Counted from the first letter of the stretch, positions 3,688-63,547 are shown. The stretch is DNA of 64,000 nucleotides from Dimorphilus gyrociliatus (GCA_904063045.1 CAJFCJ010000005.1:544685-608684); one strand, 5' to 3'. Translations and numbers: made by a program. Notes: a model not told the origin generated them from the letters alone.

Positions 3688-4044
3688 ATCCACTTGAAAA
3701 AAGACATACAAAGACAACAGATATAATAAGATATATATATATATATATACTGTATATTTGCAAAGTAATCTATGAATAGGTCCTTAATTATTATTTTAGG
3801 GCGTTTCCAAAATTCGTGACTACAGCAATTTGACATGGCCTATTTTTATGCTATATATAATCATAATAATGAATAAAATCAATATTCAAGAACAACAATA
3901 CTTTCCGTATTAATTATGAATATTCATTAGGTGGAATTTATTAGTATGCTGTATAGCTTAACAGCAAATTTATCTACTTTTTTCAAGTCTATTCTTGTTT
4001 TTTCAACTTCAAAAAAATTTGGTACTTATTGCCGGACAGAGATC

Positions 4045-4116
4045 TGCCGTGACCAGGATTCGAACCTGGGTTGTCTCGGCCACAACGAGAAGTACTAACC
4101 ACTATACGATCACGGC
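4045..4116 (-). tRNA. trnH-GUG: tRNA-His(GTG), copy 1
   Basis: Cloverleaf GCCGTGA/TCACGGC-A, anticodon arm TCTCG-TT-GTG-GC-CGAGA, T arm CCAGG-TTCGAAT-CCTGG. T-run terminator after a conserved trailer. Confidence 0.97.
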
Positions 4117-4723
4117 TTACAAGTACTCGAAACGCCTCGGATTTAATGGAAAATACGACAATTTTTTAATAAAAAATCGCTTTTGGAAATTCAAATTTTT
4201 GAATATTTTGGTCCGAAAAGACCGTTGACTTGAACAATAGCGCGCTGTGATTTATAGCCAATGACTATATAGCATAAATAGTATTAGGAGATTTCAATCG
4301 CATAATAATAATATGAATAACCCTAATTGTTCACTTTGAATACTCTTTATTATTACGTATCCTCCCTTATACATCCTGCCTTCTGAAATACTATAATAGA
4401 GATTTATGGAAGAAACTTGAGAACATTTTTTAAACTTAACATAATGGTTTTCTTTAAGGTTCTTTTTATTCTCCCTTATATATAACTATATTCTAGCTAT
4501 ATTACAGTTATATTACTAATTAAATAGGTCATGTTATTTTTCCAATATGCCTATTTTACTGCTAAACAATCAATAAACAACGAAAAATGCATAAAAACTT
4601 CAAAAAAAGTGCTTTTAATGCTTTTGTCTATTTTTCTTTAATCAATTTGTTAAGCGTTAATTTGTAACGGTATTTCGCTGTTTACATATCAATTTTGTAA
4701 AAAAAACATTTGTATTGTAACAG

Positions 4724-4829
4724 GGTAGCGTGGCCGAGCGGTCTAAGGCGCTGGTTTAAGGTCAATTATAAAAGTGATGTTAATACACCAGTCTCTTCGG
4801 AGGCGTGGGTTCGAATCCCACCGCTGCCA
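4724..4829 (+). tRNA. trnL-AAG: tRNA-Leu(AAG), copy 1, 24-nt intron at 4762-4785
   Basis: GGTAGCG/CGCTGCC-A acceptor, CTGGT-TT-AAG-G[intron]C-ACCAG, long variable arm. Intron at canonical 37/38 with a U32-A(-3) anticodon-intron pair. T-run downstream. Confidence 0.95.
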
Positions 4830-4961: not shown

Positions 4962-7900
4962 TTAAAATTCAAAGCAGCTTCTATTCATCCATACTATGTT
5001 GTCAATGGCAATATCTCCACGATAGCTAATTCCTCGTGTAGCTTTTATAACTAAACGATATCGACCTACTGGAACTTCTAAGCTCATTTGTAACCATTCA
5101 TATCCTTGTTGTCCCTTTCTTCCCCATGCTCCTCCTATCTGACCTAATTCATTTTCAACATATACCTCTAGCTTTTCAATATGAGGACCGTACATATGGT
5201 AACGAAGAGATATACACGAAACTGATTCTAAGGTAAAAAAATTTGATTTAATCGAGGCTTGATCTCCTTGTTTGGCTGGTTTAGACGATTCGGCATAAAT
5301 GTATTTCAATCCTTCAAATGCCTTTTCTGGTCCTGTTCTTGCAGAACTTGTTGATCCTATTTGAATAATCCACTTGTACTTTTTGTTGTCTGTAAGGTGA
5401 AGTTCAGGGCAATCTTTTTCAAAACTACAAGCCATAATTTGCTTATCTTCACAAGTTTCTCCTTCAAATTCACTAGGACAAATACATTCGTATTTTCTTT
5501 TATCGTATTTATCAAGTTTACAAGTTCCTAGATAATTGAAAAAAAGGTTGTTTTTATTCTTAGAAGAATTGAATTGCTGTTGTTATACAATCACCTCCAT
5601 TTTGACATGGATTTTCTTCGCAAGGATCTATAATTTTAATTTCGCAATATCTTCCTTCATATCCTAGCTGACATTCGCAATTAGATGTTGTGAATTCTTT
5701 ATTCCATCGCTTTTCATTATCATAATATAATTGGTGATGCGAGTAACAAAGTGCTGTTTTGTGAAACGTAAATGTTAGAATTGAATTTGTATACTTCAAC
5801 TATAATAAAACACCTTCATTTTTGCAAGGATTATTGCTAATACATGGATCAAGAATCTCGCAAAATTTTCCTGCATATAGATTCGAACATTGGCAGAAAG
5901 GTTCTACAAATTGCTCTACATAATCTCCCTCCTCGGTATAATTGTAGGTCAAATGTGCACGACAAGTTCCTAAACAACAGTGGCGAAAGATAGTTTAAAT
6001 AGAAAGAGTTTCTAATTACTAACCTCCATTCTTGCAGATTTCGTTAGTGTAACATGGATTGGTTATCTGGCAGTTATTTCCAGCGAAAGGTGGATTACAA
6101 CTACACTTAGCAATTGCTACAACTTTTTCTCGTTGATAAGAGTACGAAACCCAGCATTGTCCTTGATGGGATATGCATTATTATTCGTATTGTGTTGGTA
6201 AATACGAACTATCTTACCTTTTCCATTGCAGGAATGTAAATTACAAGGATTAGGTGATTTACAGTTAAATCCTACAAAGTCTTTAGAACAAATACAATAA
6301 TACTTTCCTGTACTTCCGTAACTATGACACGTTCCTTTATGCAATTAAAATTAGTAAAAAGATTAGAAATTGGTATTTTATATATTTACCATTGTTTTCG
6401 CAAGGATTCTTTGCGCATCCGTCAATAATCCTTTCTGAGCAGTTCTCACCCGTAAAATTTCCAGCACATTTACAAAAAACTTCACTTAATTCTGTTTTTC
6501 CATTCTTCCATTGATAACATCTGCCTATTGTACATTAGCTAAGATATTATTAGAGAAAGTTTTACTCAAACTGTCAATACCATTGTTTTTGCAAGTTGTA
6601 GAATTACATAGTTTAGGAGTTGGGCTATCGCAATGCTTTCCCTCAAAACCTTTGTTACATTTACATCTATATTCACGGCTATTTGCAACTCCGAAACATT
6701 TTCCTTGTTTTTGAAGAAAATCACAAGTATAATAGAAATTCAACATGTTCATTAACTAACCATTATTTTTACATGGGTTCTCCAGGCAAGGAGAACTCTT
6801 TTCACATCGAGATCCAAAAAAACCTTCTTTGCAAATACAGCTTACAACATAAGATACTTCTCTCGTAGAGCTTCTATAGCTGACGCATGTTCCTATGAAG
6901 CATTATAAAAAAAAGTATTTAAACAATTTCATTATCAACAACAAAACCTTTGTTTTCACAATAGCTATTTTTACAAGCATCCTTTTTCATAAGTCCGCAA
7001 TTATATCCTGTGAAACCCTCTGGACATACACATTCAAATGATGGTGAAACTGATTTACAGACTCCGCCGTTCATACAAGGATTGGATGAGCAAAAATTAT
7101 TTTCATCACCTGACCTTGGATTGTTCCCATTTGGGTATTTGCCCCCAGTTGATCCAGGATAATATCCTCCTGTTGATCCTGGGTAATTTCCACTTGGATA
7201 ATACCCTCCTGTTGTTCCTGGGTAACTTCCACCAGTTGACCCAGGATAGTTTCCACCTGTTGATCCTGGGTATTTTCCACTTGGGTAATATCCTCCTGTT
7301 GATCCTGGATAGTTTCCACTAGGGTAATATCCTCCTGTTGTTCCAGGATAATTTCCACCAGTTGACCCAGGATAGTTTCCACCTGTTGATCCTGGGTATT
7401 TTCCACTTGGGTAATATCCTCCTGTTGATCCTGGATAGTTTCCACTTGGATAATACCCTCCTGTTGATCCTGGGTAGTTTCCACTTGGGTAATATCCTCC
7501 TGTTGATCCTGGATAGTTTCCGCTTGGATAATATCCTCCTGTTGATCCTGGGTAGTTTCCACTAGGGTAATATCCTCCGGTTGATCCTGGATAGTTTCCG
7601 CTTGGATAATATCCTCCTGTTGTTCCAGGATAATTTCCACCAGTTGACCCAGGATAGTTTCCACCTGTTGATCCTGGGTATTTTCCACTTGGGTAATATC
7701 CTCCTGTTGATCCTGGATAGTTTCCACTTGGATAATACCCTCCTGTTGACCCTGGATAGTTTCCACTAGGGTAATATCCTCCTGTTGATCCTGGATAGTT
7801 TCCGCTTGGATAATATCCTCCTGTTGATCCTGGGTAGTTTCCACTAGGGTAATAACCTCCTGTTGTTCCAGGATAATTTCCACCAGTTGACCCAGGATAG

Positions 7901-8499
7901 TTTCCACCTGTTGATCCTGGGTATTTTCCACTTGGGTAATATCCTCCTGTTGATCCTGGATAGTTTCCACTTGGATAATACCCTCCTGTTGATCCTGGGT
8001 TATTTCCACTTGGGTAATATCCTCCTGTTGATCCTGGGTAGTTTCCGCTTGGATAGTATCCTCCTGTTGTTCCTGGATAATTTCCACCAGTTAACCCAGG
8101 ATAGTTTCCACCTGTTGATCCTGGATAGTTTCCACTTGGATAATACCCTCCTGTTGATCCTGGGTATTTTCCACTTGGGTAATATCCTCCTGTTGACCCA
8201 GGGTATTTACTCCCAGTTGATCCAGGATAATTTCCACCCGTTGACCCAGGATAGTTTCCACCTGTTGATCCTGGGTAGTTTCCACTTGGATAATATCCTC
8301 CTGCTGACCCAGGGTATTTACTCCCAGTTGATCCAGGATAATGTCCACCAGTTGACCCAGGATTGTTTTCTCCTGTTGATCCTTGACTTTTTCCATTATT
8401 TTTCTCTGATGTAACTCTAACCCAACCTGGTCCTTGTGGTAAAAAGTCATATTTTGCGATTAAACTAATAGTAAGAAATAAACGAAACATTTCCCTCAT
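4962..8499 (-). CDS. Secreted Gly/Tyr/Pro-repeat + ~9-10 EGF + C-terminal MAM protein (EGF-MAM paralog 1), multi-exon
   Basis: 526-aa first-exon ORF: hydrophobic N-terminus, ~410 aa of [21 protein letters not shown] repeats, then EGF ([12 protein letters not shown]...[12 protein letters not shown]). Further EGF exons at 5560-6890. MAM domain in ORF 4962-5435 ([36 protein letters not shown]). Confidence 0.9.
7141..8370 (-). repeat. Coding tandem repeat of 39-nt (13 aa) and 24-nt (8 aa) units with higher-order organisation
   Basis: Recurring plus-strand units such as cctcctgttgatcctggatagtttccacttgggtaatat. Thr-Thr variant anchors at 7212, 7338, 7620, 7863 and 8067. Confidence 0.95.
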
Positions 8500-13729: not shown

Positions 13730-13830
13730 GGTAGCGTGGCCGAGCGGTCTAAGGCGCTGGTTTTAGGTCTAATACTGATTCTAGAAACACCAGTCTCATT
13801 GAGGCGTGGGTTCGAATCCCACCGCTGCCA
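13730..13830 (+). tRNA. trnL-UAG: tRNA-Leu(TAG), copy 1, 20-nt intron at 13768-13787
   Basis: CTGGT-TT-TAG-G[TCTAATACTGATTCTAGAAA]C-ACCAG. The intron 3' part TCTAGA pairs with the anticodon loop. T-run follows. Confidence 0.95.
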
Positions 13831-17816: not shown

Positions 17817-17917
17817 GGTAGCGTGGCCGAGCGGTCTAAGGCGCTGGTTTTAGGTCTAATACTGATTCTAGAAACACCAGTCTCATTGAGGCGTGGGTTC
17901 GAATCCCACCGCTGCCA
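17817..17917 (+). tRNA. trnL-UAG: tRNA-Leu(TAG), copy 2, 20-nt intron
   Basis: Identical to 13730-13830 including the intron; flanks differ. Confidence 0.95.
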
Positions 17918-41544: not shown

Positions 41545-41837
41545 AAGTTACCTTAAGGGACGAAAACAATGGATAAATTCCACCAGATAATCTAAATATT
41601 TTCAATCATAAGCTCAAATTTAAAGTAGAAAACATTAGAGAACGCAAGAAAGCGAATTTTTCTAGAAATTGGAAGTCGATAAAGTATCGTTACGCTGGAA
41701 CAGATGTTGAAAAATCTTACTGAAAAAAGTATTTAAAAACTTATGCTTGAACAGGTTATTCAAACATTATATAAAAGAAAAAAGATTTTATTCAATATTT
41801 TATCTACTACAAGCATATGCTATAAAAAAAAAATGTA

Positions 41838-41928
41838 CATCTCCGGTGGGACTCGAACCCACAGCCTCCGAATAACCTCGCTCTAGCCTACTAGAAGTCC
41901 GACGCGCTATCCATTGCGCCACGGAGAC
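41838..41928 (-). tRNA. trnR-UCU: tRNA-Arg(TCT), copy 1, 18-nt intron (GTAGGCTAGAGCGAGGTT)
   Basis: GTCTCCG/CGGAGAT-G acceptor, TCGGA-CT-TCT-A[intron]A-TTCGG. Confidence 0.93.
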
Positions 41929-42190
41929 GTTCTGAAATCAATGGTCATTTTTTAAAACATATTTGTCAACTATATTGCTTTTTTTGAATTATCATTTCAA
42001 TCTTGTACTAATTACGTAACAACGTCATTATCATAAAATTTTGGAATACAATTGTTAAATTTAATGAAAATCTACTCGAGTTTTAGAAAATTCCAAACGA
42101 ATTTTAAAGCGAATGAGATGAATTAAACAACTTGAAATAAAAATACAAAAGTTCCATCTTTTTTGAAGGGTTTAAAAAGGAAAAAGTATA

Positions 42191-42281
42191 CATCTCCGGT
42201 GGGACTCGAACCCACAGCCTCCGAATAACCTCGTTCTAGCCTACTAGAAGTCCGACGCGCTATCCATTGCGCCACGGAGAC
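42191..42281 (-). tRNA. trnR-UCU: tRNA-Arg(TCT), copy 2, 18-nt intron
   Basis: Same body; intron GTAGGCTAGAACGAGGTT. Confidence 0.93.
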
Positions 42282-42659
42282 GTTCTTGAAATGTTACGGA
42301 TATATTTTGGGATTTATTTTCACTTTTCCCAAGTGATATTTCATCAATTTATTGCAGTTGGTTAAGTTTACATGTTGATGCAGAATAAACGTACTAGAAA
42401 TGATTATATATCTATCTACTTGTTTCTTATCTTGGGATTAAAATGATAAAGAAAAAAAGACTAAAGCATCTCAAATATTCTTAAACTTCTGTTATCTTTC
42501 TTATGAAAAGCTCTTTTTTTTTAATGAAAAATTTCCCTTTAGGAATAATTTATTCAAGTGAATAGAACGTAAGCATAGAAAGTAGATTGCATGGAATTCA
42601 AAGAAGTCAATATACGAAATAAATTATTATTTAAAAACAGTTGTTTTACTTATAAGAAC

Positions 42660-42750
42660 GTCTCCGTGGCGCAATGGATAGCGCGTCGGACTTCTAGTAG
42701 GCTAGAACGAGGTTATTCGGAGGCTGTGGGTTCGAGTCCCACCGGAGATG
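42660..42750 (+). tRNA. trnR-UCU: tRNA-Arg(TCT), copy 3, 18-nt intron
   Basis: Exact reverse complement of copy 2. Confidence 0.93.
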
Positions 42751-43702
42751 TCTGAGATTTTTTTGCTCAAATCCAATTCATAATTGTATCAAGATGATAA
42801 TGCCGTTGTGTAATACATTAAGTATTATAAAGATCAAATAAAGAATATAGATAAGTTCAATAATCAATAAAACACATTAAAGACATTCACAAAGTAGAAG
42901 ATCAGGATTGATTAGCAAACTCTAAACGATTGAAGAATGAACATGCTGGAAATAAGTAACAACTTTAATTCTCTTGAATTGAGCACACAATGTCTCCTCT
43001 TGCTGTTTCTCTGGTTTGAAGATGAGAATTAGTGTCATCAAAAGACAAATATTGTATTTCATCCATAAAGAAGGTTAAACACGAATAATAATCGAACAGT
43101 TGGATGTTTTTTTATCGATCGATTGAAACCTTGTAGGCGGTTTCTTTGTTCAAAGTATTAATCATAAAACCATATTTACTAGCAAACACTAAAATTAAAA
43201 CACTTTTAAAAGTGTTAATCATTTAAACTAAGAATATTTCATGTCAATAAAAGATTTAATAATTGGTTCATTAATTGGTTTTTATCTTCTATGGACAGTA
43301 AATAGTTCAGATTTTAATAATACATTATTATAAAATGAAGTAAACAGTACTGCTTCTACTTTAAATGAAACTTGTCTTTCTTACGTTTTAAATGGAAATT
43401 TTGATTATGATTCTACTGAATTGAACGATAGTATGTTCAAGGGCAACATACTCAAGTTTAGCGGTGACATTTCCTGGATAGGGTATTGATTTTAGATTGA
43501 TAACTCGAAATTTCCCCTGAGAAATGAAATTGAATGAAAGAAGGATACAATTATTCATTCGATATTTGTGACAGAGAAATGTGATCAATTACTTATGATC
43601 GATTGAGCAAAGTTCCGGTAATATGTTTGGCAAAAGATTATGTCAATGACATTAAATCTATCAGAAAAGCAGGTAATCTCTTATTTTATTTCCCAGAGAG
43701 AG

Positions 43703-51297: not shown

Positions 51298-51385
51298 ATA
51301 AAACTAGCTATTTACCGTTTTAATTCTTTTAATATTTACTAAGAGTTATTCAATTTTAAGATCGATGGAAAATGTGTACTTGTAA

Positions 51386-51457
51386 GCCGTGATCGTATAG
51401 TGGTTAGTACTTCTCGTTGTGGCCGAGACAACCCAGGTTCGAATCCTGGTCACGGCA
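51386..51457 (+). tRNA. trnH-GUG: tRNA-His(GTG), copy 2
   Basis: Identical to copy 1, including the 10-nt leader and 24-nt trailer. Confidence 0.97.
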
Positions 51458-51807
51458 GATCTCTGTCCGGCAATAAGTACCAAATTTTTTTTGGGTTGGG
51501 AGATAACAAAAGATTTTATTTTGCCATCACCTTTTAGTAGAAAGTTGACATGATCAGGATACTTAAGTAATAAGGCATATGCTCTTCATCCGCTTACCAG
51601 TTTTTGAACAAGTTAAAAATAGGCTAACACTCTCAGTCAGTCAGATGTTTTTATTTGTTCTTATTTTTCTTTTTTCCTCGAATTGAACTACAGAGATTCT
51701 AGATAGTCTAAAAAATTATTATAGAAGACGAGGGAAATTTTGAGAAAAAGAGCGATAAAAGGGAACAACGTGCCAAAAAAATTGGTACTTATTGCCGGAC
51801 AGAGATC

Positions 51808-51879
51808 TGCCGTGACCAGGATTCGAACCTGGGTTGTCTCGGCCACAACGAGAAGTACTAACCACTATACGATCACGGC
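51808..51879 (-). tRNA. trnH-GUG: tRNA-His(GTG), copy 3
   Basis: Inverted identical copy, tail-to-tail with copy 2. Confidence 0.97.
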
Positions 51880-52131
51880 TTACAAGTACACATTTCGATA
51901 AGGGCTCAAATTTAAATTACCGCTGATAGAACTTGATAAAATCGTTCTCTTGAACAGCGCTTAAAAAATGAAGTAAATTATTAATGATGCTCTTTGAGAA
52001 AGTGTTCTTATAGATTTTACAAATTTTCTATAGAAAACGTAATAAAGATATTTCAATGAAATAAAAACTTATTGTTACTTTCTTCTGGTCAGTTATCGAT
52101 GGTGACTGTCCACGTTTAAGTCTGCATATGA

Positions 52132-52237
52132 GGTAGCGTGGCCGAGCGGTCTAAGGCGCTGGTTTAAGGTCAATTATAAAAGTGATGTTAATACACCAGT
52201 CTCTTCGGAGGCGTGGGTTCGAATCCCACCGCTGCCA
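52132..52237 (+). tRNA. trnL-AAG: tRNA-Leu(AAG), copy 2, 24-nt intron
   Basis: Identical to 4724-4829 including the intron. Confidence 0.95.
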
Positions 52238-55725: not shown

Positions 55726-55927
55726 AGAGAAATTTCCAATTGCTGTCTTTTTATTACGTGTTGACTTATTCAAGTTATTCCTCTCTTCCTCGCACCGTCA
55801 ACTATATAACTTCATTTTATAAAAAGTCTTGTGAATGTTATAAAAGTGGTAAGCTGTTTAAATATAACTTGTTCAAATACTTTCAATAGAATTAAATGCT
55901 TTGAGAGAATAGTTCAAAAAATATATA

Positions 55928-56018
55928 CATCTCCGGTGGGACTCGAACCCACAGCCTCCGAATTACCTCGTTCTAGCCTACTAGAAGTCCGACGCGCTAT
56001 CCATTGCGCCACGGAGAC
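55928..56018 (-). tRNA. trnR-UCU: tRNA-Arg(TCT), copy 4, 18-nt intron (ends GAGGTA)
   Basis: Same body; one intron substitution at the last base. Confidence 0.93.
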
Positions 56019-56272
56019 GTCTTGAATGATAATTTCATCGTTTCTTACATAATTTCATATCGAATTGACAATATATAACATAACTGCCAATTCGATAGTG
56101 TTATCGTAATCCTTTAATACCAAAGATGAATAAACAATTGATTTAGAGCAACTTTGTTAAAAGTTAAAGATATCAACCTTTGCTTTATCAAAGAATAAAA
56201 ATATTGATTAGAAAATAACTCCTTTTTGAACGAGCTACTGTTTTTTTTTAATTCAAAATCAAGTACTTGTAA

Positions 56273-56344
56273 GCCGTGATCGTATAGTGGTTAGTACTTC
56301 TCGTTGTGGCCGAGACAACCCAGGTTCGAATCCTGGTCACGGCA
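56273..56344 (+). tRNA. trnH-GUG: tRNA-His(GTG), copy 4
   Basis: Identical body, leader and trailer. Confidence 0.97.
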
Positions 56345-56587
56345 GATCTCTGTCCGGCAATAAGTACCAATTTTTTTCATTTTTTGCCCATTTCCTAATG
56401 ATTGTATGAGATCCAGACGAAATGGAATTACCTCCATTAAATAGATTAAGCGACTGTTGATAAGACTTTGACCCTTGTTGAAAGATTCTGTTATTTATAG
56501 TATAACTAGTTGTGTATAAGACGAAACACGCAAAAATCAGTTTTCAATGAATTTCAGGTAAATCTGGCTAAAAAAAATATATATATA

Positions 56588-56678
56588 CATCTCCGGTGGG
56601 ACTCGAACCCACAGCCTCCGAATAACCTCGTTCTAGCCTACTAGAAGTCCGACGCGCTATCCATTGCGCCACGGAGAC
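56588..56678 (-). tRNA. trnR-UCU: tRNA-Arg(TCT), copy 5, 18-nt intron
   Basis: Identical to copy 2. Confidence 0.93.
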
Positions 56679-57234
56679 GACATAACTACTGTTTAATTAT
56701 TTAATAGTATATTCTATAAATTAATTGTACCATTAATTTTCAAAGTGTGAATGAACAGCTTCAAATTTGCATACGCCATATTTGTCTTCTCTTTTTTGTA
56801 CAAGAAACAAATTTCCAGTACATTGCACTTGTAACGCTGTTTTGCAGCTATTTAAAGCTATCTGAAACAGTTTTCCATTATAGACCCGTCATCACATCCA
56901 TTATACGTATTTCAATACTAATTTGATATTAAGTCAAAACTGCATTGTACACGTATATAAAACACATCCGTTACAAGGTAATAGAAAACTCGACGGCTAT
57001 TCTATAAAAGAAACAGAGATCAAGTAGAAAGATTACGTAACTTTCTTAATAATACACGAAATATAAGGATTGAGCGAAGAAGTAGATTTTAAATTTCTCT
57101 TGCTGTTTATAGATTGTAATTATGATCCGAACGAAATTTGTAAGTTTCCTATTAATTCTACAATTATTTGCTTTTTATTCGTGAGCTTTATTTCTCCAAG
57201 GTGAACAATTATATTTAATATAAACAAGAAACAA

Positions 57235-57660: not shown

Positions 57661-58108
57661 TTCCAGAGAATTTTTATCGAGCAAAACACATTTTTTCCAG
57701 AACATACATAACCTTAGTGTAGCTTACAAGTTCTGTAGGCCAACCTGAGTAGTGTCCGCCCATGAGTACTTGTTACATTTTTTGTCTTTCGAATAAAACC
57801 GTTTGTTAATGCAGAATTTATGGTTTGTTTTACATCAAAGTTACCTCAATACCGCAAATTATTTATTAGTTTCGATTTTCGTGTTTTGAACAATTGATTT
57901 TGCGACTGAAGTATGCGCTAAAGACTTTATTATTGAAGGATCTCTATTGAACGATTGCTTTTATTCACTTTATTAAGAATACAAACAATTACATAACTAG
58001 TCGGAAGACATGGGGAAAAAGTTAACAGAAAATAGGCTAAATGATAAGAAAATTGTTCATATTTAATTAACCATTGTTTGTAGCAATTAAAACTTCAAGT
58101 ACTTGTAA

Positions 58109-58180
58109 GCCGTGATCGTATAGTGGTTAGTACTTCTCGTTGTGGCCGAGACAACCCAGGTTCGAATCCTGGTCACGGCA
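58109..58180 (+). tRNA. trnH-GUG: tRNA-His(GTG), copy 5
   Basis: Identical body, leader and 23-nt trailer, then TATTTTTT. Confidence 0.97.
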
Positions 58181-59563
58181 GATCTCTGTCCGGCAATAAG
58201 TACTATTTTTTTTTCATCATTTCTTAATTAAATAGCAGATATTGAAGATTTTCGAATAATTTAAAAGTCTATCTTACATTACTACTTTTTAAATGTCTAT
58301 AAATAGATTGCATCAATTGTCCTAGTCAGTGAAGAGTTTGTTATGAAATTGATGTCTATTGGTTTATTCTTTATTATGTTTTTTTAATTTCCGTCTTTTT
58401 CATCGTCACCGATAATGTAACGACTGCATTCTATGACAAGACTTTGACTCTTTGCAAAGGTACTCTTCTGTCTCTTTCAAACCGCTTTTCAAAGTTTGTC
58501 TCTTCTATAGCATGTCAAGAACAATATGGTCAAAAAATTTCTTCTCGTGTCGCACTGATCTTGAAGTGCTCGAGTTGTGTTTAGTTTACTGTCTATTGAA
58601 CGTCTTCCTTTTGAAAGTCTTCGCCATACTTTCTCCGCTGCCATCCATACAATTATTTTCCACAATTGCAAACAGTTTTAATGTATAAACTTATAGAAAC
58701 AATCATTGATTTGAACATTAAACAAAAACTGATAAATATTTCATCATTTTACATTCAAGCGGTTTGAAAAATATCGAGTATTCAATTCCTGTCGAAACAT
58801 TAGTTTTTATTATTTTGGCAAATGATTAAAAGACTTAGTGCACTCAAAATTCTTTTACTTTATCTATAAAACTCTGCAAAATCAGAAAAATATTTTACTT
58901 TTTGCGATTGTTTGCAATTGAAACAATGTAAACTTATTTACTTGGTGATTGGTTAGAACATATTTGATAAATTATAAATATTTATAGAGCGACAGATCGA
59001 TCCTTACGGAGAACAGGTGAACCAACCCTGGTAAAGTATTATAGCTCGACTCATTTCATTAACAACTCTATTTTTATTCTTATTTTTTATTGACAGTTGA
59101 AGAGTCCCAGTTCCAGCTAACTGATATCGTAAAAAAGTGTTCTACATGAGGCTCAAGGTTGAATTATTGTATGTGCAAATCGATGCAGTTTTATTGACAA
59201 CTCAAAGGAAACCTGTAGGATTGATTCGCAAACGGGAAAATCACAAATGTTTTCGATATTTGTGTCTAGAGAAGGGGAAAATATCAAAATATCATTTCAA
59301 TTGTAAAGAAACAGGAAAGTATTTGACTGTTTTAATCAAATAAGATAAAGAGAATAGTAAATTTTCGTAGTATGAATATTCAAAATACATGTAGTAATAA
59401 ATTTCAAAATGTAATTTTTATTAGATGTTCAGACCAAAGAAACTTTGTCCCGCAAAGTTTTGCTTGAAAACATAGGATAATAAAATAGAAAATGTAACAA
59501 TTGAACATTAAATTCTAGTAATAGAGGCAATTCATAAAGCTTACAAAGGATAAAGTTTACATA

Positions 59564-63418: not shown

Positions 63419-63547
63419 TGTCAGAAGTGGGATTTGAACCCACGCCCGCATTCGCGGACCAGAACGCCCCGCACAGTTCTAACATACATGTTTAACTGTA
63501 AGCATTACGCTTGAGTCTGGCGCCTTAGACCACTCGGCCATCCTGAC
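63419..63547 (-). tRNA. trnL-CAA: tRNA-Leu(CAA), 45-nt intron at 63465-63509
   Basis: GTCAGGA/TTCTGAC-A acceptor, CCAGA-CT-CAA-G[intron]T-TCTGG, variable arm CCGC-GAAT-GCGG, C32-G(-3) anticodon-intron pair. Confidence 0.93.

Follow-up and report, generated by a model that had tools for sequence, protein, structure and literature searches.

Pairing of the 5' leader with the 3' trailer of a precursor tRNA (pre-tRNA), which extends the acceptor stem, has been reported in yeast (Lee 1997, Ziehler 2000) and human (Gogakos 2017), as related in passages of PMC8457004; tRNA leaders and trailers generally lack sequence conservation (PMC8457004). Here we describe five tRNA-His genes in a 64,000-nucleotide (nt) stretch of the Dimorphilus gyrociliatus genome (GCA_904063045.1 CAJFCJ010000005.1:544685-608684; this whole stretch is called the window), which share an invariant leader (positions numbered back from -1) and trailer (from +1) predicted to pair with each other in a helix that we call H1. 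The likeness to pre-tRNAs of the Lee 1997 type, as those passages present them, lies in a leader-trailer helix of at least 6 bp (8 bp in Dimorphilus) and an unpaired nucleotide at -1 beside the RNase P site; that type continues the acceptor stem directly, whereas H1 does so only in lineages whose trailer lacks a copy of the acceptor 3' strand. Within what the same passages cover, the His helix differs from known extended stems in belonging to one isotype on the sampled contigs (just 5 of 606 non-His trailers are long enough), in its compensatory change across many lineages, and in the structured insert of 20-30 nt with an acceptor-strand copy that separates it from the stem in many of them. 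We conclude that the His flanks are an isotype-specific, deeply conserved and more elaborate form of the known leader-trailer pairing of pre-tRNAs.

Leader-trailer pairing in yeast pre-tRNA-Trp is said, in work by Kufel and Tollervey of 2003, to put 3' processing before 5' processing. In that case an isotype-specific stem reportedly reverses the usual processing order, which is the mechanism that we would propose for tRNA-His; it concerns another isotype in one yeast, with no acceptor-strand copy or trailer hairpin described. Mouse miR-1983 reportedly arises from pre-tRNA-Ile by a La-dependent, pre-miRNA-like refolding (Hasler and colleagues, in 2016), and there, as in the His units, an alternative pre-tRNA fold involving leader and trailer competes with the cloverleaf. 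The miR-1983 precursor is one long Dicer hairpin, whereas the alternative His fold mainly exchanges the partners of the acceptor strands. A single hairpin of the miR-1983 type was rejected for the His units: the T arm is kept in every alternative fold, the D or anticodon arm persists in several of the predicted ones, and Dimorphilus also retains a D-region hairpin and the anticodon arm. A bulge-helix-bulge site for the splicing endonuclease at the leader-trailer junction, with two 3-nt bulges, one per strand, around a 4-bp helix, was likewise rejected, as the relatives bulge 4-5 nt on the leader strand only, with a continuous trailer strand, and Dimorphilus has a 2-by-1 loop.

The leader-trailer interaction of the tRNA-like mascRNA of MALAT1 (Torabi, DeGregorio, Steitz 2021, PMC8457004) is comparable in that a conserved trailer pairs upstream beside a tRNA-like fold, and mascRNA requires a bulged base before the RNase P site to be cleaved efficiently. 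It is part of a vertebrate long noncoding RNA made by RNA polymerase II, whereas the His element flanks a genuine RNA polymerase III (Pol III) tRNA gene, and unlike mascRNA the His precursor has a second possible partner for its acceptor 5' strand. A His-specific peculiarity immediately upstream of the gene is also reported in C. elegans, whose nuclear tRNA-His genes encode G-1 (Rao and Jackman 2015, PMC4338351). Several lineages with structured His trailers have a G at -1, whereas Dimorphilus has an A; conserved trailers and leader-trailer pairing are not described in the C. elegans account (PMC4338351). The sequence-only reading that preceded this analysis had called the element undescribed. 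This was too strong for leader-trailer pairing as such, extended stems with a -1 bulge being known in yeast and human from passages of PMC8457004, and it stands for the His-specific trailer design: in a full-text literature search, incomplete in coverage so that an older account is possible, neither long, structured, covarying trailers peculiar to His nor a copy of the acceptor strand turned up.

The five genes, predicted by ARAGORN as tRNA-His(GTG) (Table 1), were aligned with 80-nt flanks, and no variation was observed from -10 (GTACTTGTAA) through the tRNA to +23 (GATCTCTGTCCGGCAATAAGTAC). Past +23 all five units continue with a C/T-A-A/T linker and then 7-9 T, and the outer flanks are unrelated, barring faint pairwise likeness over a few bases. 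As the block ends at the T-run and begins at approximately the expected Pol III start, it corresponds to the predicted primary transcript. The 23-mer trailer has five exact occurrences, with 0 mismatches, versus 0 expected. The window's other multi-copy tRNAs have in common no more than a few flank bases, partly conserved. Five genes that we read as intron-containing tRNA-Arg(TCT) are near-identical including the intron (two variable intron positions) and have one invariant flank base per side, plus partial conservation at -7..-1; in two Thr(AGT) copies the leaders differ at once and the trailers are alike only in a T-run from +1, and two intron-containing Leu(AAG) copies diverge directly outside the tRNA. 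No target-site duplications or A-tails were seen abutting the His units. The alignment and these controls bear out what had been claimed from the sequence alone, namely that five His copies share invariant -10..-1 and +1..+23 segments, that only His has conserved flanks of such length here, that the limits of conservation (-10..+23) are the ends of H1 (-10..-3 with +16..+23), and that -1 is A, so that G-1 is not encoded.

In Dimorphilus, H1 joins leader -10..-3 (GTACTTGT) to trailer +16..+23 (ATAAGTAC) in 8 bp with one G-U pair, extendable to 9 bp in copy 5 through A-11/U+24. The same RNAfold prediction pairs CGGC (+11..+14) with G1-G4 and brings trailer +6..+10 against G70-G+1, a GGCAG/CUGUC hairpin that closes an AUCU loop. 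The bases at -2 and -1 (AA) are predicted to be unpaired at the RNase P site, within a 2-by-1 internal loop (A-2 A-1 facing A+15). This alternative fold, exactly the one that had been drawn by eye over the acceptor stem and for which folding of the precursor had been suggested as a check, is the RNAfold minimum-free-energy (MFE) structure of the 105-nt unit (-31.8 kcal/mol). With a z-score of only -1.77 relative to shuffles, the Dimorphilus sequence taken singly is not decisive. The GGCAG/CUGUC hairpin is specific to Dimorphilus and is a remnant of a larger hairpin at +1 and a 'UG' found in relatives.

Relatives were sought by scanning a metagenome collection with the 28-nt T-arm/acceptor end of the Dimorphilus tRNA-His; this pattern held the acceptor 3' strand fixed, and its T-arm version was chosen to differ from what we take to be the human tRNA-His T arm. 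The scan yielded 120 eukaryotic loci with 135 His genes and more than 20 different tRNA bodies, and no contig looked human. To guess from contig name prefixes, the samples may include gutless-oligochaete, termite-gut and ant fungus-garden material. The Dimorphilus tRNA-His body is intact and identical to the body in other taxa. ARAGORN predicts 775 tRNA genes in the 120 loci plus the window. When trailer length is taken as the distance to the first TTTT and genes on the same contigs are compared, the median is 21 nt for 121 His genes versus 4 nt for 606 non-His genes (at most 7 for every non-His isotype), and trailers of at least 15 nt occur in 64 of the 121 versus 5 of the 606. His genes also stand out by three flank bases: 82% have U at -2 (versus 19% of non-His genes), 97% have a purine at -1, and 60% have G at +1 (versus 14%). 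Some His lineages have a trailer of only 5-6 nt, which can pair with a conserved leader.

Several observations accompany the survey. In a separate arthropod-type His group (L036, L056, L079, L009, L028, L048, L059, L100 and others) the leader, UGUCUCUA, does not vary, and the trailer, GUGAC(A), is short and can pair either with the leader or with tRNA positions 65-69; the sequence further out is unrelated. G stands at -1 (…AUG|G1 or …GUG|G1) in the structured-trailer lineages L073, L082, L094, L097, L110, L118, L101, L016, L108, L067 and L043, and could be a genome-encoded G-1, which among nuclear genes has to date been reported from C. elegans only (PMC4338351). At L002, L008 and other loci, His genes with the same 3' half carry introns of 13-18 nt after position 38/39. 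Many of the contigs are very dense tRNA clusters, with 12 tRNA genes in 2.3 kb at L009, for instance. L014 encodes a 438-amino-acid open reading frame (ORF) of the 7tm_7 receptor family whose sole match is itself, and a 279-amino-acid ORF of L104 matches only metagenome and Logan proteins.

H1 is the sole feature common to all long-trailer lineages. It comprises 6-9 bp between the leader, at approximately -13..-4 (-10..-3 in Dimorphilus), and the last trailer bases before the U-run; the complementarity is found in nearly every long-trailer His locus, while the sequences vary by lineage. The helix is kept through more than 20 different sequence pairs, among them GGTGACGT/ATGTCACC, GTGTGGCG/TGCCACAC, GAGCAC/GTGCTC, GATCCCC/GGGGATC, CCTCCA/TGGAGG and CCCAGCA/TGCTGGG. 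In a MAFFT alignment of 33 sequences with 30 distinct leader strands, all 33 form at least 6 contiguous H1 pairs (mean 7.1), compared with only 13.5% of 912 combinations of leaders with other lineages' trailers. A 14-sequence MAFFT alignment, with the structure stated in advance, was used to test covariation: both partners change in all 9 H1 pairs, and pairing reaches 100% at the 5 core pairs, which have 3-4 pair types apiece. Overall, 94% of H1 cells pair, versus 31-41% after a shift of the partners by 1-3 columns. From this alignment we built a covariance model (R1), which matches the copy 2 unit at 109.1 bits and gave 88 hits; in the alignment of these, with 84 distinct rows, each H1 pair has 4-6 pair types. 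In the R1 alignment the H1 core has 47 G·U to 8 A·C, and the trailer hairpin described below has 23 to 2, indicating pairing in the sense-strand RNA and not a DNA palindrome. All predicted folds leave U or A at -2 and a purine at -1 without a partner at the RNase P site; these two bases are AA in Dimorphilus and UA or UG in the other lineages.

Applied to the 33-sequence alignment, RNAalifold returned the cloverleaf; without prompting it also gave a hairpin (H2) that begins at +1 and has 4 to 14 double changes in each pair. Examples are GAGA..UCUC, GCAC..GUGC, AUGC..GCAU and GAUUCC..GGAGUC. After H2 there usually comes 'UG' and next [U/A]CA[U/C]GG[C/U] plus A, a copy of the acceptor 3' strand UCACGGC plus A73 which, where present, lies directly 5' of the H1 3' strand. 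Complementarity to G1-A7 at 7 of 7 positions occurs in 30.5% of 59 distinct long trailers versus 3.3% of shuffled trailers. The variants of the copy (UCAUGGC, UUACGGC, ACAUGGC, ACACGGC, AUGCGGC, UCACGGU, UCAUGGU) include none that matches the real strand, and most of the differences give a G·U or open the last pair. The copy is found with three tRNA bodies, the one shared with Dimorphilus, a 'GTATAG' type and the arthropod type, and in copy-bearing lineages, including Dimorphilus, 15 to 30 trailer nt (hairpin, UG and copy) separate A73 from H1. Other lineages have H1 without the copy, and their MFE fold is the native acceptor plus an extended stem.

The Dimorphilus trailer reads GATCTCTGTC-CGGCA-ATAAGTAC; it matches the internal GATCTCTGTTACGGCA of the trailer type represented by L082 and then continues with its own H1 strand. 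Its first ten bases match the internal GATCTCTGT of the L082-type trailers minus their first 11 nt. It looks like the L082 design less its initial 11 nt, which make up the 5' half of H2, and less a single base of the copy, and such shortening suits a compacted genome. Dimorphilus is a member of a large group of lineages that have H2, 'UG' and the strand copy besides H1. Two coral metatranscriptome libraries contain contigs with the His unit (window 4011-4127) and three differences from it, one being A>U at +2. The outer flanks of these contigs are absent from the window, indicating a sixth locus, either in this genome or in one very close to it; as the contigs may derive from DNA, they carry no information on transcription. 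Two further organisms have trailers of like design (…GCUGUGUGUCUCUAUCAUGGCA…, …UCUCUGGUGCGGCA…), with U at -2 and A or G at -1. As an observation in its own right, in one contig of run X21 the tRNA 3' end and the next 2 nt lead back into G1 (window 4043/4116); a tandem copy, a circular form or, given the very high depth, an assembly cycle could explain this.

The comparison across species supports part of what had been read from the window. Relatives that lacked the flanks or changed them without compensation had been named as a possible refutation, and H1 is present and compensated in dozens of His loci, an outcome that favours a selected RNA structure and also supports the claim that more than gene conversion is at work. 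The CGGCA that had been seen to repeat the tRNA 3' end corresponds in many lineages to a conserved copy of the acceptor 3' strand, imperfect in every case. The alternative fold, which involves the acceptor stem, is the MFE structure in Dimorphilus and also in four representative copy-bearing relatives (unconstrained folding, z -2.2 to -3.6). With constraints on the folding, the structure in which the copy is the partner of G1-A7 lies within a few kcal/mol of the cloverleaf-containing fold in most sequences, and is usually 0-6 kcal/mol better by the nearest-neighbour model. It gives each conserved trailer element a partner: H1 the leader, the copy G1-A7, and 'UG' C72-A73, which extends H2. Neither the copy nor 'UG' is paired in the cloverleaf fold, so that their conservation is the main argument for a second conformer.

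Three properties of known processing enzymes bear on what two conformers could do. Leader-trailer helices hinder RNase P unless -1 is bulged (a passage of PMC8457004, citing Lee 1997); yeast pre-tRNAs with longer structured trailers need Trz1 (RNase Z), an endonuclease (PMC10275265); and yeast Thg1 is faster and more accurate in vitro on CCA-bearing tRNA-His (PMC6470698). Together they lead us to propose ordered processing. In one conformer the cloverleaf would sit on a three-way junction closed by H1. In the other, G1-A7 would pair with the copy and stack on H1 while C72-A73 pair with 'UG', masking both cleavage sites: the RNase P site would lie in a 2-5 nt bulge or internal loop of a long helix and the RNase Z site inside a helix. 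The clamp and the masked conformer would delay or order end processing, with RNase Z removing the trailer endonucleolytically before, or together with, removal of the leader. By the time Thg1 acts, the 3' end would be finished and A73 exact, the 5' end being open to Thg1 only on a 3'-finished molecule. In copy-bearing lineages, including Dimorphilus, the masked conformer would add a switch.

That the block is the tRNA-His primary transcript, and that what is conserved is a precursor-specific RNA structure ordering end processing, is a model to which we give about even credence. Doubtful, though possible, is the further model in which the tRNA-His of many protostomes, and possibly of animals more widely, would come from a two-state precursor, where a weakened trailer copy anchored by H1 would rival the real strand for G1-A7, hide the RNase P and RNase Z sites and time maturation for the Thg1 (G-1) pathway. 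We infer that the five-fold identity in Dimorphilus reflects purifying selection on the RNA, possibly helped by gene conversion. A number of points weigh against ordered processing by a switch. G1-A7 and C72-A73 are invariant in the sample, so the pairing of the copy and 'UG' rests on conservation and not on covariation. Nearest-neighbour energies ignore tRNA tertiary structure and modifications, and the masked conformer may therefore never be populated. Many His lineages have H1 without the copy, or a trailer of 5-6 nt, hence a switch is not a general mechanism. The R1 alignment, which underlies the 84-row and G·U/A·C counts, was obtained by fitting to the model and is tilted in favour of the structure. 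A run search for D. gyrociliatus RNA containing the locus found none, only runs sharing the tRNA body. Older work on Drosophila pre-tRNA-His is said to have found 5' before 3' processing, which misfits a strict 3'-first order.

A static clamp, in which H1 with H2 is fixed and never switches, would hold the ends together, shield the 5' triphosphate and the 3' U-tail from exonucleases and force a precise endonucleolytic cut after A73, the copy being left over from a past duplication of the tRNA 3' end. This suits the facts that only H1 is common to all long-trailer lineages, that the copy-free ones fold as native acceptor plus H1, and that H2 begins exactly at +1; the order 'hairpin + UG + UCAYGGCA' resembles 'T arm + UGG + UCACGGCA', a likeness to the T arm and acceptor end that suggests an origin of the trailer by duplication, and the Trz1 dependence of yeast pre-tRNAs with longer structured trailers (PMC10275265) fits as well. 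A neutral relic should nevertheless decay as the rest of the trailer did, and the copy and 'UG' persist where the sequences of H1 and H2 have turned over completely, with changes that mostly preserve wobble pairing. We consider the static clamp rather unlikely.

The selected product could instead be the trailer itself, released as a 25-45 nt small RNA of the tRF-1 type with a hairpin and U-tail, for which leader pairing would only aid release. Long trailers in His only, with a conserved single-stranded motif and a covarying hairpin, would be expected of such an RNA, and defined tRF-1 RNAs are known, one of them relatively stable and from a human His gene (PMC10191329). A free trailer RNA has, however, no need of the covariation of trailer with leader, some lineages have H1 without the motif, and the run searches gave no small-RNA evidence; we regard a selected trailer RNA as improbable.

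Very improbable, in our judgement, are functionless flanks that would owe their identity to gene conversion, to a local duplication of recent date or to a copying of the transcript through RNA, with the helix a by-product. The five copies do lie within 54 kb, in a tRNA cluster with other duplications, their 100% identity yields no covariation within the species, and the unit equals the transcript, as in retrocopies. The Arg, Thr and Leu copies, however, are equally identical in the gene and not in the flanks; the His units lack the target-site duplications and A-tails of such copying; the sixth locus has the same unit limits between different outer flanks; and the same architecture recurs with compensatory changes at many unrelated loci, which rules out recent duplication or gene conversion as the sole cause. 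An element acting at the DNA level, either the terminal inverted repeats of a small tRNA-carrying mobile element or a protein-binding palindrome, is hardly credible even though the unit starts and ends with GTAC and its 8-nt ends are imperfect inverted repeats, since the helices tolerate G·U 6 to 11 times more often than A·C, an excess compatible only with sense-strand RNA pairing, since the helix sequence differs in almost every lineage, so that no fixed protein site is conserved, and since a mobile element with terminal inverted repeats is ruled out by that G·U excess together with the lack of target-site duplications. A tRNA-derived short interspersed element or miniature inverted-repeat transposable element was rejected on the missing abutting direct repeats, the intact tRNA and a unit ending at the Pol III terminator.

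Table 1. Features of the five tRNA-His units, in window coordinates
Feature	Position	Strand	Basis or contents
Copy 1, 5' leader -10..-1 (GUACUUGUAA)	4117..4126	-	same bases in all five copies
Copy 1, H1 5' strand, leader -10..-3	4119-4126	-	paired in MFE fold; homologous helix covaries in relatives
Copy 1, tRNA-His(GTG), 72 nt, discriminator A73	4045..4116	-	ARAGORN; Rfam tRNA 61.9 bits
Copy 1, trailer +1..+10 (GAUCUCUGUC), remnant of H2 and 'UG'	4035..4044	-	alignment; fold; trailers of relatives
Copy 1, trailer +11..+15 (CGGCA), truncated copy of acceptor 3' strand plus discriminator	4030..4034	-	fold; aligns with [U/A]CA[U/C]GGCA of relatives
Copy 1, trailer +16..+23 (AUAAGUAC), H1 3' strand	4022..4029	-	alignment; fold; 8 contiguous pairs
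Copy 1, T7 run, predicted Pol III terminator, 4 nt past H1	4011..4017	-	sequence; alignment
Copy 2, unit	51376..51492	+	leader 51376-51385, tRNA 51386-51457, trailer 51458-51480, CAAA, T8 51485-51492
Copy 3, unit	51775..51889	-	leader 51880-51889, tRNA 51808-51879, trailer 51785-51807, CAA, T7 51775-51781
Copy 4, unit	56263..56377	+	leader 56263-56272, tRNA 56273-56344, trailer 56345-56367, CAA, T7 56371-56377
Copy 5, unit	58099..58214	+	leader 58099-58108, tRNA 58109-58180, trailer 58181-58203, TA, T9 58206-58214

The window around these units is AT-rich (27-36% GC) and contains 19 tRNA genes according to Rfam versus 14 according to ARAGORN. A scan of the locus and of the whole window against Rfam placed only tRNA (RF00005) above its gathering score; the best non-tRNA match is SpF41 (28.5 bits versus a threshold of 52), which overlaps the tRNA. 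The Arg(TCT) genes are those that ARAGORN returned as 'tRNA-???' with the anticodon ctag, at 41837-41929(-), 42190-42282(-), 42659-42752(+), 55927-56019(-) and 56587-56679(-). Five Rfam genes were missed by ARAGORN and probably contain introns: 13730-13830(+) and 17817-17917(+), a pair 99% identical; 4724-4829(+) and 52132-52237(+), the Leu(AAG) pair; and 63419-63547(-). An array of approximately 20 copies of a 39-nt unit, 60-96% identical, occupies 7117-8397.

To our knowledge, tRNA-His is the only tRNA that requires an extra 5' nucleotide after RNase P cleavage. A 5' addition and a precursor structure that are both peculiar to His suggest that precursor folding, the sequence in which the 5' and 3' ends are processed and the accuracy of G-1 addition may be linked. 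The His-specific design of the flanks, as read from the sequences, points to a control step for tRNA-His that may so far have gone undescribed. Its isotype-specific trailer provides a new signal for tRNA annotation, and a two-state pre-tRNA, if true, would be a natural subject for RNA biochemistry. The design spans lineages as distant as annelid and arthropod-type tRNA-His bearers, and it places the whole primary transcript of one isotype under selection, against the view of tRNA leaders and trailers as disposable.

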